Virus record (IMG/VR): IMGVR_UViG_3300017917_002466
Location: 62,001 to 126,000 of that record
Reading direction: 5' to 3' (one strand)
DNA: 64,000 nucleotides
A model generated the notes under the pieces. The model had not been told where the DNA came from and ran no database searches. It worked only from the letters and a program-made list of their open reading frames with translations. Of the stretch, positions 41,571 to 43,986 are shown one piece after another; within the stretch, counting starts at the first letter, position 1, and every line of letters begins with the position of its first letter. The position numbers and the translations under genes were made by a program.

Positions 41571-41678
41571 ATTGTACTGTTCCGCCTGTGAATTTTTTTG
41601 AAAAAAAGACCTTGACAGACTCGTTGAAAGAATATATTAGATGCATAGATGAAAAAGTTCTTTGACAAATGATTCCAG

Positions 41679-41815
41679 AAGAGTAGGTTCTGCAATCAAA
41701 ATAATACTTAAAGGAAGTCCCAATGTCATAGCCGGGGACACAAAATAATCGGTTGTGGTGGACTTTTATTAATTGAGAAAGTTAGTTCTAAAAGAAATAA
41801 TCTGACTACTCTGGG
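41679..41815 (+). ncRNA. Y-RNA-like element 4
   Basis: AAGAGTAGGTTCTGCAA..CTACTCTG. Confidence 0.7.
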
Positions 41816-41835
41816 AATTACTAAATTATGGCTTA

Positions 41836-41969
41836 AAGGATGGGTTCGGCAAACCAAAATAGCCCGAAAGGGCATCAAGGTAGCCGTCAATAAAAGGCGG
41901 CGGAGAGGAAGTTAAACTTGCAAAGGCTTCCCTCTCTAAAATAAAAAAGAAACCTTTCTAACATCCTGT
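41836..41969 (+). ncRNA. Y-RNA-like element 5
   Basis: AAGGATGGGTTCGGCAA..CATCCTGT; GAAA-tetraloop and other inner hairpins. Confidence 0.75.
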
Positions 41970-41995
41970 AGCTTATTCTTTGACAAACGCATCTA

Positions 41996-42134
41996 AAGGA
42001 TGAATTCGGCAACCAAATTTGATGCGAAAGCATCACTATAACAGGTTATAAGCTGCGACACCGAAAGGTGACCAGATACTAACCAAGGTTTTTTGGAGAC
42101 TTTTCCCTAAATAAAAATCTTTCAAGCATCCTGT
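41996..42134 (+). ncRNA. Y-RNA-like element 6
   Basis: AAGGATGAATTCGGCAA..CATCCTGT; two GAAA tetraloop hairpins. Confidence 0.75.
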
Positions 42135-42152
42135 GATGTTTTCAAAAAGACC

Positions 42153-42181
42153 TTGACAAACTTGTGAGAAGATATTATATT
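42153..42181 (+). promoter_or_regulatory. sigma70-type promoter within the ncRNA array
   Basis: TTGACA-N17-TATATT. Confidence 0.7.
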
Positions 42182-42229
42182 AAGAAAGAGGGCAGAAAAT
42201 TTCGGTAAAATGATATATACATATTCGGG

Positions 42230-42321
42230 AAGGATAGATTCAGCAAACTAAAAGGAAAATAGCTCGCAAGAGCTTATTTGGTTCAAATCCAAAAACGTCG
42301 CAAGACGAAAAACTATCCTGT
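42230..42321 (+). ncRNA. Y-RNA-like element 7
   Basis: AAGGATAGATTCAGCAA..CTATCCTGT; two GCAA tetraloops flanking a tttgg-TTCAAAT-ccaaa T-arm mimic. Confidence 0.78.
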
Positions 42322-42341
42322 GACCTACAAGATAATAAATG

Positions 42342-42401
42342 AAGGGTGAGTTCAGCAACTCAAAAACAAACAACTCATAATTGTTAAAAAGTTCACCCTG
42401 T
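42342..42401 (+). ncRNA. Y-RNA-like element 8
   Basis: AAGGGTGAGTTCAGCAA..TTCACCCTGT; aacaa-ctCATaa-ttgtt anticodon mimic. Confidence 0.78.
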
Positions 42402-42434
42402 TTTTTCTACAGTTCGGATTGAAAGAAAGTTTTG

Positions 42435-42486
42435 AAGGTTGGATTCCGCAATTAAAATCCATAATTAGGAAAAAAGACCAACCTGT
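42435..42486 (+). ncRNA. Y-RNA-like element 9
   Basis: AAGGTTGGATTCCGCAA..CCAACCTGT. Confidence 0.75.
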
Positions 42487-42513
42487 AACCTTTAATGTTT
42501 AGGAGGCCCGCAA

Positions 42514-43986
42514 ATGGCTAAGACTCGCACGAACGAAGGCGCAATTCAGTACGACCACTCTCTCGACCACGCAGTTGAGTTCTTCTCAAAGGCCGGTTCA
42601 ATTTATTCCAAGAAGGCAAAGGGCAAGCGCCCATTCTACGGCAACGAGCAGTCCGCTCTTGAGCTTTTCAAGGCCGTCTGGTGCTCAGGTAACCACGAAA
42701 TGGCTATGAAGCTTATGTTCTGGCTTCGTGACTGCCGTGGTGGAGCAGGAAACCGTTCCGCTTTCCGTGATTGTTTGAAGTGGGTTACTGAGACTGACCC
42801 GCGCTGGGTTAAGGCCAACATTGGTCTTGTTCCTGAGCTTGGTCGTTGGGACGACCTTCGTGTTCTTAACGGAACTGATGCTGAGGCCGTTGCGACTAAG
42901 ATTTGGGCTGAGGCAGTTGCCAAGAAGGACGGTCTTGCCTGTAAGTGGGCTGACCGTTCAGACACCAACATTCTTCGTGAGCTTCGTAAGGCGAAGATTG
43001 TCAAGGACATTGGCGAATTCCGTCGTCTTCTTGCGGCTGGCCGTAAGAACATTGTTGAGCGTGCAATGTGTTCAGACCGTTGGAACGAGATTGAGTATCC
43101 TCACGTTCCTTCTGTTGCAATGAGCCGTTACACCAAGGCTTTCAACAAGCACGACGAAGCCCGCTTCTCCAAGTTCAAGGAGAAGGTTCAGAAGGGTGAG
43201 GCTAAGATCAATGCAAGCGTATTGTTCCCTCACGACCTTGTTCGTACCTTGAAGGCTGATGGAGACTGTGAGATTGCAGATGCACAGTTCAATGCAATGC
43301 CAAACTGGGTCGGTGATAGCAAGCTTCGTATCATCACTCTTTGTGACTCTTCGGGTTCAATGGGTTGTGATATTGGTGGAAGCGTACAGGCAATTGATGT
43401 TTCAACTTCATTGTCATTGTACTGCTCAGACCGTATTCCAAAGGATTCTCCGTTCCACCGTAAGTTCATCCAGTTTGAGTCTGAGTCCAAGTTGACTGAC
43501 TGGGCTGGTATGACTTTCTCCGAGGCTTATGGCTACGGTAAGAAGGTAACTTCTCGTCGTCGTGGATTCGGATATGGTCAGGGAATCTTTGATGGTGCTT
43601 GTGGTGGTACTCGTATTGACACTGCACTTGATATGTTGCTCAACCACGCCAAGATGTTCAAGGCTACGAATGAGCAGGTTCCGAATATGATTCTTATTAT
43701 CTCTGATATGCAGTTCCACGGCGTACCAGATGGAACCAACGGCAAGACTGTTGTTGAGCATTGCCTTGAGAAGTGGGAAAAGGCCGGATACACTCGTCCA
43801 AAGATTGTTTACTGGAACCTTTCTGGTTATGCCGGTTCACCAGCAACAGTCACTCACAAGGACGTTGGTATGGTTTCTGGATTCTCTCCGAGCATCCTTG
43901 AAGCCATTATGAAGGCCGAAGACTTCACTCCAATGGGTATTATGCTCAAGAAACTTGAGAAGTACAAGGTTGCTATCCCCCAGTAA
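42514..43986 (+). CDS. Ro60-like TROVE/vWA protein (DUF2828-type)
   Basis: KLMFWLRDCRGGAG.R, GRWDDL, VPSVAM, N...LFPHD; vWA MIDAS DSSGSM..GGT..ISDMQF..VYWNL. Confidence 0.8.
   Translation: MAKTRTNEGAIQYDHSLDHAVEFFSKAGSIYSKKAKGKRPFYGNEQSALELFKAVWCSGNHEMAMKLMFWLRDCRGGAGNRSAFRDCLKWVTETDPRWVKANIGLVPELGRWDDLRVLNGTDAEAVATKIWAEAVAKKDGLACKWADRSDTNILRELRKAKIVKDIGEFRRLLAAGRKNIVERAMCSDRWNEIEYPHVPSVAMSRYTKAFNKHDEARFSKFKEKVQKGEAKINASVLFPHDLVRTLKADGDCEIADAQFNAMPNWVGDSKLRIITLCDSSGSMGCDIGGSVQAIDVSTSLSLYCSDRIPKDSPFHRKFIQFESESKLTDWAGMTFSEAYGYGKKVTSRRRGFGYGQGIFDGACGGTRIDTALDMLLNHAKMFKATNEQVPNMILIISDMQFHGVPDGTNGKTVVEHCLEKWEKAGYTRPKIVYWNLSGYAGSPATVTHKDVGMVSGFSPSILEAIMKAEDFTPMGIMLKKLEKYKVAIPQ

Follow-up and report, generated by a model that had tools for sequence, protein, structure and literature searches.

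A 64-kilobase (kb) stretch of phage DNA with a GC content of 34% (positions 62,001 to 126,000 of the IMG/VR virus record IMGVR_UViG_3300017917_002466, hereafter the window) encodes nine copies of a structured RNA element, six of them just upstream of a gene for a DUF2828 protein and three within a large tRNA array. Each copy combines a constant handle with a variable insert that mimics parts of tRNA, and the copies belong to a conserved structured RNA family that is tied to the DUF2828 family by position and strand. We attribute the nine elements to small non-coding RNA genes whose products would form a ribonucleoprotein (RNP) of the Y-RNA type with the DUF2828 protein and carry swappable tRNA-mimic modules, a reading to which we give a probability of about 0.7.

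The pattern AAGN6TTCNGCAA was found eight times in the window, always on the plus strand, when 0.17 matches were expected from shuffled sequence and none of 100 shuffles reached eight. Two of these exact matches lie in the tRNA array and six near the DUF2828 gene (Table 1). A ninth copy, also in the array, has the box TTCCAGCAA, which is one base longer. The first-pass annotation had placed six copies upstream of the gene and three among the tRNAs, and all nine sites were recovered, eight exactly and one as a variant of one nucleotide (nt). All copies follow the common plan AAG-helix-UUCNGCAA...helix'-CUG: in nine of nine, the 5' arm has a pairing partner on the 3' side, and CTG comes after it. 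The covarying closing helices of the first-pass annotation, among them GGATGAG/TTCATCC, GGATGGG/TCCATCC and GACTGG/CCAGTC, were present in the sequence, and RNAfold closed all nine copies with the listed helix. AAG starts and CUG ends occur throughout, and the end is CUGU in six copies. Inserts range from ~25 to ~110 nt, which gives four copies of 51–61 nt and five of 91–138 nt. No Rfam family reached its gathering score on any of the nine copies.

The six gene-side copies sit 30–835 nt upstream of the DUF2828 gene and on its strand, inside the 944 nt of non-coding DNA that separate the Hsp20 gene from the open reading frame (ORF) at 42514–43986; this array contains no tRNA. The three remaining copies are embedded among the tRNA genes with spacers of 10–17 nt. 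The order Hsp20, RNA array, DUF2828 is kept in relatives with 76–91% protein identity, where the array measures 350–680 nt. Individual copies could be followed as well: copy 1 has an orthologue with the compensated helix GATTGG/CCAATC in relative L090, a relative of copy 3 in L088 carries the box AUACAGCAA, and the orthologue of the proximal copy 6 is kept in L001, L088 and L090.

Related loci were obtained from IMG/VR by protein relatedness (80 loci, 31–75% identity to the window protein). A script that searches for the two halves of the handle returned 85 instances in these loci, 82 of them on the gene strand. Because this script selects on pairing, the 5' box was also counted alone as a pairing-free test, which gave 78 occurrences on the gene strand versus 11 on the opposite strand. 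A pairing 3' arm followed by G was present for 68 of the 78 gene-strand boxes, compared with 25% for shuffled arms and one of 11 boxes on the opposite strand. A covariance model, R1, was then built from 33 short copies and its matches were taken at E ≤ 0.1. All 105 matches of R1 in 81 phage loci lay on the DUF2828 strand, as did all 47 in 80 GTDB species-representative loci, an independent collection of bacterial and archaeal assemblies. Nearly all R1 matches are found within ~500 nt upstream or ~350 nt downstream of the DUF2828 gene; the end of one copy very commonly falls 15–60 nt before the start codon, and arrays in related loci reach seven copies. R1 matched window copies 4 (32.4 bits, an independent match) and 8 (32.5 bits) and misses the long-insert copies 1 to 3 even with its filters off; the handle-halves script recovers these.

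In the alignment of 104 matches, five of the seven helix pairs covary and 99.9% of the cells are paired. Conservation within the box is 100% for each of C, G, C and A and 98% for the final A. The family consensus reads UUUAG-GAUNN-R-UUCAGCAA ... AAAAR-NNAUC-CUGUU, with the U of CUGU at 95%. R1 matches adjoin the DUF2828 homologues of Listeria phage A511, Staphylococcus phage 6ec, Campylobacter phage CP81 and mycobacteriophage Moostard, in which the protein is annotated as 'Ro-like RNA binding protein', and they occur in the tRNA arrays of the Felix-O1-like phages ekra and Bas63. The box of distant phages is UAACAGCAA, UUACAGCAA or UUGCAGCAA. Position and strand linkage hold down to ~28% protein identity, in phages of four bacterial phyla.

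For the reverse test, IMG/VR was scanned with an RNA-only pattern, which returned loci of 1.4–15 kb. A DUF2828 gene was present in 32 of 80 such loci, always on the strand of the RNA, compared with ~1.4% of complete phage genomes on deposit; tRNA genes were present in 76 of 81, with a mean of 15.6 per locus. The RNA family therefore has two homes, one beside the DUF2828 gene and one interspersed in phage tRNA arrays. In A511 (NC_009811.2), a near-threshold match to the ROOL RNA was noted at 3465–4016 of locus L082 (87.5 bits, threshold 99.1); it falls in the interval from the tRNA array to the two Class-I-like copies that lie upstream of gp178, the DUF2828 gene.

The RNAs thus consist of a constant handle and variable, tRNA-mimicking inserts. 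In the window the inserts comprise GNRA hairpins (copies 2, 3 and 4), a T-arm look-alike (copy 4, UUUGG-UUCAAAU-CCAAA) and anticodon-loop-like hairpins (copies 5, 7 and 9), the latter with 5 base pairs (bp) and 7-nt loops of the anticodon form Y-U-NNN-A-A. When an anticodon-like hairpin was defined by at least 4 bp and a loop of 7 nt whose second position is U and whose sixth is a purine, it was found in 15 of 33 short copies, compared with 1.2 in shuffled inserts. Longer copies include T arms among their inserts, and in loci L076 and L069 a full body of D arm, anticodon arm and T arm is present in which the handle replaces the acceptor stem. A permuted arrangement (T arm, closed acceptor stem, D arm) is seen in window copy 8 and in L044, L049, L060 and ekra; the ekra copy (L081, 10173–10631) has the box UUUACAGCAA and fills an unannotated gap of the tRNA array. 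The YrlA-type tRNA-like domain is present in one of the nine window copies and in several relatives. On copy 8 the Rfam YrlA model, whose gathering score is 69 bits, gave 33.8 bits at 29581–29646, covering model positions 24–84 and hence the tRNA-like core only, and in Moostard a full-length sub-threshold match (37.9 bits) lies between the gene and a minimal copy. Folding and this partial YrlA match agree with the insert types named in the first-pass annotation, namely GNRA hairpins, a T-arm mimic, anticodon mimics and a permuted tRNA.

The assignment of the adjoining gene to the DUF2828 type was confirmed by Pfam, with DUF2828 (PF11443) at 106.8 bits (cut-off 29, E = 1.6e-30) and DUF7788 (PF25043) at 85.1 bits (cut-off 27.1, E = 5.4e-24). 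The PHROG database returned phrog_850, 'RNA-binding protein' (1.3e-93), and NCBIfam gave no match. An AlphaFold2 model built on 37 homologues had a predicted local distance difference test score (pLDDT) of 91.4 and placed a helical domain at about residues 19–261 and an alpha/beta domain at 273–481, in agreement with the helical N-terminal region and vWA domain proposed earlier. The residues of MIDAS, the metal-ion-dependent adhesion site with the pattern DxSxS..T..D, that is D278, S280, S282, T366 and D398, are invariant in the 37 homologues. When the predicted model was compared with the PDB by Foldseek, the top ten matches were all Ro60/Rsr (E = 1.9e-9 to 1.3e-5), followed by vWA/MIDAS domains. 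The query-normalised template-modelling (TM) score over the full length was 0.57–0.63 for eight of the ten, 0.36 for Rsr 2nvo and 0.46 for human Ro60 9nen. The DUF2828 protein is thus Ro60-like in its modelled fold, a likeness that is visible through fold comparison only and not in the sequence.

DUF2828 genes were found in ~700 of 50,697 deposited phage genomes (~1.4%), and the carriers include Felix O1, A511, Staphylococcus and Campylobacter phages and Vibrio jumbo phages. The ESM Atlas contains a cluster of DUF2828 proteins of ~300 residues of which 16% also match Pfam TROVE, which hints at an overlap of the two Pfam families by sequence in some lineages. DUF2828 clusters there are viral and bacterial only, and one Nucleocytoviricota cluster carries DUF7788.

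A sigma-70-like promoter precedes copies 4 to 6 and the gene, no terminator was found between this promoter and the DUF2828 gene, and the gene's own terminator, as previously annotated, is strong. With a GC content of 0.49, and of 0.51 at third codon positions (GC3), the gene is by far the most GC-rich ORF of the window and a compositional outlier, the GC3 of all 44 other long ORFs being 0.10–0.39, although relatives keep its synteny. The bias, read in the first-pass annotation as a sign of high expression, fits either strong codon selection or a foreign origin.

From the RNA family, the covariation of its helix, the gene linkage, the predicted protein fold and the tRNA-like inserts, we infer RNA binding by the DUF2828 protein, processing of the RNAs and a biological role along the following lines. 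The handle is made up of AAG, the covarying 7-bp terminal helix, an unpaired UUCNGCAA box on the 5' side that faces an A-rich 3' segment, and CUG(U). It closes the insert and would most likely be the binding site of the adjoining DUF2828 protein, which appears to be a compact Ro60-like protein with a helical and a vWA/MIDAS part. The inserts appear to copy an anticodon stem-loop, a T arm, a tRNA body without its acceptor end or a YrlA-like permuted tRNA. The RNP would then work like Ro60–Y RNA, the protein holding the handle while the insert recruits, tethers or titrates tRNA-recognising proteins. The Ro60–Y RNA analogy has an established basis (Stein et al. 2005; Chen et al. 2014, PMC4201824; phiRo60–Yrl, PMC12135203). 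Since the phage has 36 tRNAs, RtcB and an RNA ligase, the likely purpose would be tRNA surveillance or repair, or the countering of host systems that attack tRNA. For an anti-defence role, the phenotype of gp130 of phage Bas63 versus the defence system Ppl, the only one for the DUF2828 family, would provide indirect support. Copies 4 to 6 are probably transcribed together with the DUF2828 gene; the copy nearest to it, which lies ~15 nt from the Shine-Dalgarno sequence, may in addition allow translational feedback.

Several observations weigh against this reading. R1 gave no match in ~30 of the 81 phage loci. The Y-RNA motif GNCGAAN0-1G with its CGAA is absent, the phage box being UUCNGCAA or ..ACAGCAA. 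The YrlA gathering score was reached neither by copy 8 nor by the Moostard neighbour, and the 41.5-bit threshold of the dictyostelid Class I RNA family (RF01414) was not reached by the five phage copies that match it (19.6–24.7 bits). The description as Y-RNA-like thus holds for the same-strand linkage and the predicted stem with its conserved motif, but not for CGAA or the scores; the YrlA-type domain is seen in one window copy and is absent from the other eight. Likewise, the Ro60-like character predicted for the protein is supported by the fold comparison, but TROVE (PF05731) gave no match at E ≤ 0.1, and sequence searches of the PDB, with the single sequence and with a 37-sequence profile, found no Ro60. 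The mock anticodons seen most often across 130 distinct copies are UUU, UGU, GGA, UGA and UCU, but the tallies include related sequences and do not count independent events. Finally, a conserved RtcB neighbourhood was considered and rejected: no RtcB gene lies within ±4 kb in the 80 protein-seeded IMG/VR loci or in the 81 RNA-seeded loci, and the link to RtcB repair is therefore loose. In A511, genes for RtcB, an RNA ligase and a phosphohydrolase are found just downstream of the DUF2828 homologue.

The elements may be real small RNAs that serve another partner, such as a host RRM-type protein, RtcB, the ribosome or a nuclease, their linkage to DUF2828 reflecting co-expression in a tRNA-maintenance module. 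The sole proven direct binder of Class I RNAs is indeed an RRM protein, Rnp1A, and the elements are tied to tRNA arrays as tightly as to the gene. We nevertheless regard this as unlikely, because the position and strand linkage to DUF2828 persists to ~28% identity in phages of four bacterial phyla and because the protein has the predicted fold of a known Y-RNA binder. Less probable still is a purely cis-acting leader or operator of the DUF2828 mRNA, acting in autoregulation or stability and releasing no free RNA. Such a leader would explain why most loci have one copy that ends 15–60 nt before the start codon and why no terminator separates copies 4 to 6 from the gene, but three window copies stand among tRNA genes at a distance of 13 kb, copies are found downstream of the gene or within tRNA arrays in many loci, arrays contain up to seven copies, and the look-alike Class I RNAs are discrete and abundant (PMC7919456).

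That the elements are processing punctuation of polycistronic tRNA transcripts, nuclease-recognition hairpins with no role of their own, seems very improbable to us: copies do stand between tRNAs with 10–17-nt spacers, and 76 of 81 RNA-seeded loci contain tRNAs, but the six-copy array has none, the inserts are elaborate and conserved in type, and the unpaired box is invariant, as a specific ligand would require. That the elements are decayed tRNA pseudogenes or a mobile repeat lacking function at the RNA level is strongly disfavoured: some inserts are clearly tRNA-derived, but the helix stays paired in 99.9% of cells through compensatory changes, all 152 gene-side covariance-model matches in 161 related loci share the strand of the gene, and the handle does not itself resemble tRNA.

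In DNA similarity searches the best match of the window to deposited phages was 62 nt, so that no close relative is available. The window has 36 tRNA genes in total. Together with the Ro60-like gene and the genes for RtcB and an Rnl-type ligase, which lie 4–11 kb from the DUF2828 gene, the tRNA array constitutes a loose RNA-maintenance region. Between the RtcB and ligase genes, an HNH endonuclease, a DNA methyltransferase and a dehydrogenase are encoded. HNH or homing endonuclease genes were located at 36906–37625, 47408–48115 and 49874–50593. The tRNA with anticodon CUA is a solitary minus-strand gene 2.2 kb downstream of the DUF2828 gene. It suggested TAG recoding, which was rejected as reading TAG as sense lengthens no ORF of the window meaningfully. 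Additional tRNA-like sequences were detected by Rfam but not by ARAGORN at 25571–25641, 26037–26109 and 30121–30196 on the plus strand, and several of the tRNAs that were called exceed the usual length of their type (Lys 85 nt, Asn 87 nt, Ile-UAU 85 nt). One RNA copy mimics a CAU loop, yet a tRNA-Met(CAU) is not among the calls. A 101-codon ORF at 29258–29563 (plus strand) in the tRNA array has its TAA stop (29561–29563) inside the UUCAGCAA box of copy 8; it is either a small gene that overlaps this copy or a spurious ORF. The large subunit of ribonucleotide reductase (10726–14229, plus strand, 1167 residues) gave two separated profile matches (residues ~26–264 and 666–1166), which suggests an inserted element such as an intein.

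Table 1. RNA copies, the DUF2828 gene and neighbouring features of the 64-kb window
Feature	Coordinates	Strand	Description
tRNA array	25395–33663	+	35 tRNA genes (+3 via Rfam only); holds copies 7–9
Copy 7, minimal	28929–28984	+	Between tRNA-Pro and tRNA-Ser; loop AUUAAAA (UAA)
Copy 8	29545–29664	+	Handle around circularly permuted tRNA body: variable region, T arm, closed acceptor stem, D arm
Copy 9, minimal	29771–29831	+	Box UUCCAGCAA; between tRNA-Thr and tRNA-Ser; loop UUGUUAA (GUU)
Hsp20 gene	41136–41570		Upstream flank of the six-copy array
Copy 1	41679–41813	+	Helix GAGTAG/CTACTC, box UUCUGCAA, ~110-nt structured insert, CUG
Copy 2	41836–41968	+	Helix GGATG/CATCC, box UUCGGCAA; GAAA-capped hairpin and two more hairpins; fold z = -3.98
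Copy 3	41996–42133	+	Helix GGATG/CATCC, box UUCGGCAA; two GAAA-capped hairpins; z = -3.69
Sigma-70-like promoter	42153–42181	+	TTGACA, 17 nt, TATATT; 11/12; upstream of copies 4–6 and gene
Copy 4	42230–42320	+	Helix GGATAG/CTATCC, box UUCAGCAA; GCAA hairpin, T-arm-like hairpin, GCAA hairpin; z = -3.81
Copy 5, minimal	42342–42400	+	Helix GGGTGAG/TTCACCC; 5-bp hairpin, 7-nt loop CUCAUAA (anticodon-loop-like, CAU)
Copy 6, minimal	42435–42485	+	Helix GGTTGG/CCAACC; ends ~15 nt before DUF2828 Shine-Dalgarno sequence
DUF2828/DUF7788 gene	42514–43986	+	490 residues; helical N-terminal domain and vWA domain with MIDAS; predicted Ro60-like fold
Intrinsic terminator	44000–44040	+	After DUF2828 gene; 18-pair stem, T tract; strong
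tRNA, anticodon CUA (amber-suppressor type)	46207–46280	-	ARAGORN: Pyl; Rfam tRNA 55.8 bits
RtcB-type tRNA splicing ligase	48222–49541	-	phrog_1075, 1.9e-113
Rnl-type RNA ligase	54530–55567	-	phrog_968, 1.2e-42

Part of this picture was available before. The Ro60-like nature of DUF2828 was already recognised in the Bas63 preprint (bioRxiv 10.1101/2024.10.10.617714) and in annotations such as 'Ro-like RNA binding protein' and PHROG 850, and phage Ro60–Y RNA pairs are known for proteins of the TROVE type. In Rfam 15 and the searchable full-text literature we found no description of the RNA family with its distinct handle, of the library of tRNA-part inserts or of the identity of the design with that of Class I RNAs. 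DUF2828 proteins, so far 'RNA-binding' or 'Ro-like' and with no known RNA, hereby gain a specific and easily recognised family of candidate RNA partners, and unannotated gaps in phage tRNA arrays are seen to hold a library of tRNA-part mimics. The link to the Bas63 gp130/Ppl phenotype makes the mechanism directly testable in laboratory phages. Finally, a candidate protein partner and a candidate evolutionary origin are offered for the dictyostelid Class I RNAs, the function of which has, to our knowledge, been open since 2004.

Among known systems, YrlA/Rsr (RF02553; Chen et al. 2014, PMC4201824) shares with the phage RNAs a same-strand position next to the gene for a protein of Ro60 fold (predicted for the phage protein). 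Pairing of the 5' and 3' ends (by prediction in the phage RNAs), a conserved motif on the 5' side and a distal tRNA-mimic module are common to the two, and several copies are often present; copy 8 shares the permuted order of T arm, closed acceptor and D arm. The partner of YrlA, however, belongs to Pfam TROVE, whereas that of the phage RNAs is DUF2828/DUF7788 with a helical domain ~100 residues shorter; the YrlA motif is GNCGAAN0-1G, the phage box ..C-N-GCAA; and most phage copies contain an anticodon-arm mimic or other modules instead of the full tRNA-like domain of YrlA. By score and by the CGAA motif, the phage RNAs therefore fall outside the Rfam families Y_RNA and YrlA. The survey of Chen et al. 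looked only near TROVE-annotated genes (PMC4201824).

A second relevant system is phiRo60 of Thermus phage phiLo with Yrl1 and Yrl2, two small RNAs encoded just upstream of the gene for a Ro60-fold protein, for which a hijack of host RNA enzymes in counter-defence was proposed (PMC12135203). The window system likewise pairs a phage protein of predicted Ro60 fold with small RNAs encoded just upstream. In contrast to it, phiRo60 is described as a canonical Ro60 homologue, its RNAs carry CGAA, and neither a tRNA-array context nor an insert library is described in that paper (PMC12135203).

In the Felixounavirus Bas63, deletion of gp130 rendered the phage sensitive to the Ppl defence system, and the authors noted a Ro60-like structure of gp130 and guessed that some 'tRNAs' are Y RNAs (bioRxiv 10.1101/2024.10.10.617714). 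We find that bas63_0130 is a DUF2828 homologue, with 95.5% nucleotide identity to the ekra gene, whose protein has 30.7% amino-acid identity to the window protein. The gp130 gene lies directly upstream of the tRNA array, and R1 copies are found between those tRNAs. The preprint thus supplies the phenotype only and does not identify the RNAs, while the R1 copies are unannotated elements rather than annotated tRNAs. One of them (MZ501086.1, locus L087, 5373–5447) is partly overlaid by a short minus-strand 'hypothetical protein', bas63_0137; this ORF and bas63_0138 in the same gap may be spurious.

A second and unexpected likeness of the handle, missed in the first-pass annotation, is to the dictyostelid Class I RNAs. 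RF01414 (Dicty_Class_I_RNA) is the best Rfam match to copy 7, end to end at 24.7 bits, and the top match for five phage copies in all, always over model positions 1–56; the two copies of 6ec scored 22.4 bits each and the two of A511 23.1 and 19.6 bits. Class I RNAs have a terminal stem of 6 bp that compensatory changes preserve, an AAG start and a CUGU end that are both conserved, and an unstructured stretch of 11 nt adjoining the 5' strand in which T3, C6, C9, A10 and A11 are near-invariant; they measure ~60 nt with 32–41% GC and a variable remainder, occur in many copies per genome, are discrete and abundant, and were concluded to be unique to Dictyostelia (Kjellin et al. 2021, PMC7919456). 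D. discoideum sequences follow the scheme GTTGAC-CTTACAGCAA-...A-rich...-GTCAAC-TG. The phage RNAs share the AAG start, the CUGU end, a short terminal helix under compensatory change (7 bp, of which five covary), the A-rich 3' segment, the variable middle, the multiplicity of copies, a GC content of ~30–40% and, in the short copies, a length of ~50–65 nt. Amoebal boxes read CCUUACAGCAA and phage boxes UUCAGCAA, UUACAGCAA or UAACAGCAA, and the invariant C, C, A and A are common to both; in the boxes compared directly, CUUACAGCAA of 6ec and CUAACAGCAA of A511, T3 is kept only partly. The Class I length of 42–65 nt applies to the four short window copies (51–61 nt) and not to the five of 91–138 nt, and a few amoebal members are also long.

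The phage RNAs differ in being genes of bacterial viruses with sigma-70-type promoters or a tRNA-array context, and in their many long tRNA-like inserts. The DUSE element, located ~60 nt upstream of Class I genes, was not found at the phage copies, where, as a eukaryotic element, it is not expected. Apart from T3, which is kept in part, and the length, which the short copies share, every RNA-intrinsic feature of Class I is present in the phage handle, which otherwise lacks only the DUSE promoter and the score threshold. The published partner of Class I RNAs, and their only proven direct binder, is the RRM protein Rnp1A (PMC7919456), and a link to DUF2828 has not been reported. DUF2828 proteins are known from plants and mimivirus-like contigs, the latter with DUF2828/DUF7788 genes. 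We consider, tentatively and at somewhat less than even odds, that a single ancient class of RNA unites the phage family with the dictyostelid Class I RNAs and has the DUF2828 family, of predicted Ro60 fold, as its cognate protein. This would constitute a second Ro/Y-type RNP lineage, spread over phages, the prophages of bacterial and archaeal assemblies, eukaryotes and, possibly, giant viruses. Social amoebae would in that case not be the only carriers of Class I RNAs, the core partner long sought for these RNAs would be a DUF2828 protein, and their variable region would serve as an effector module, like that of Y RNAs.

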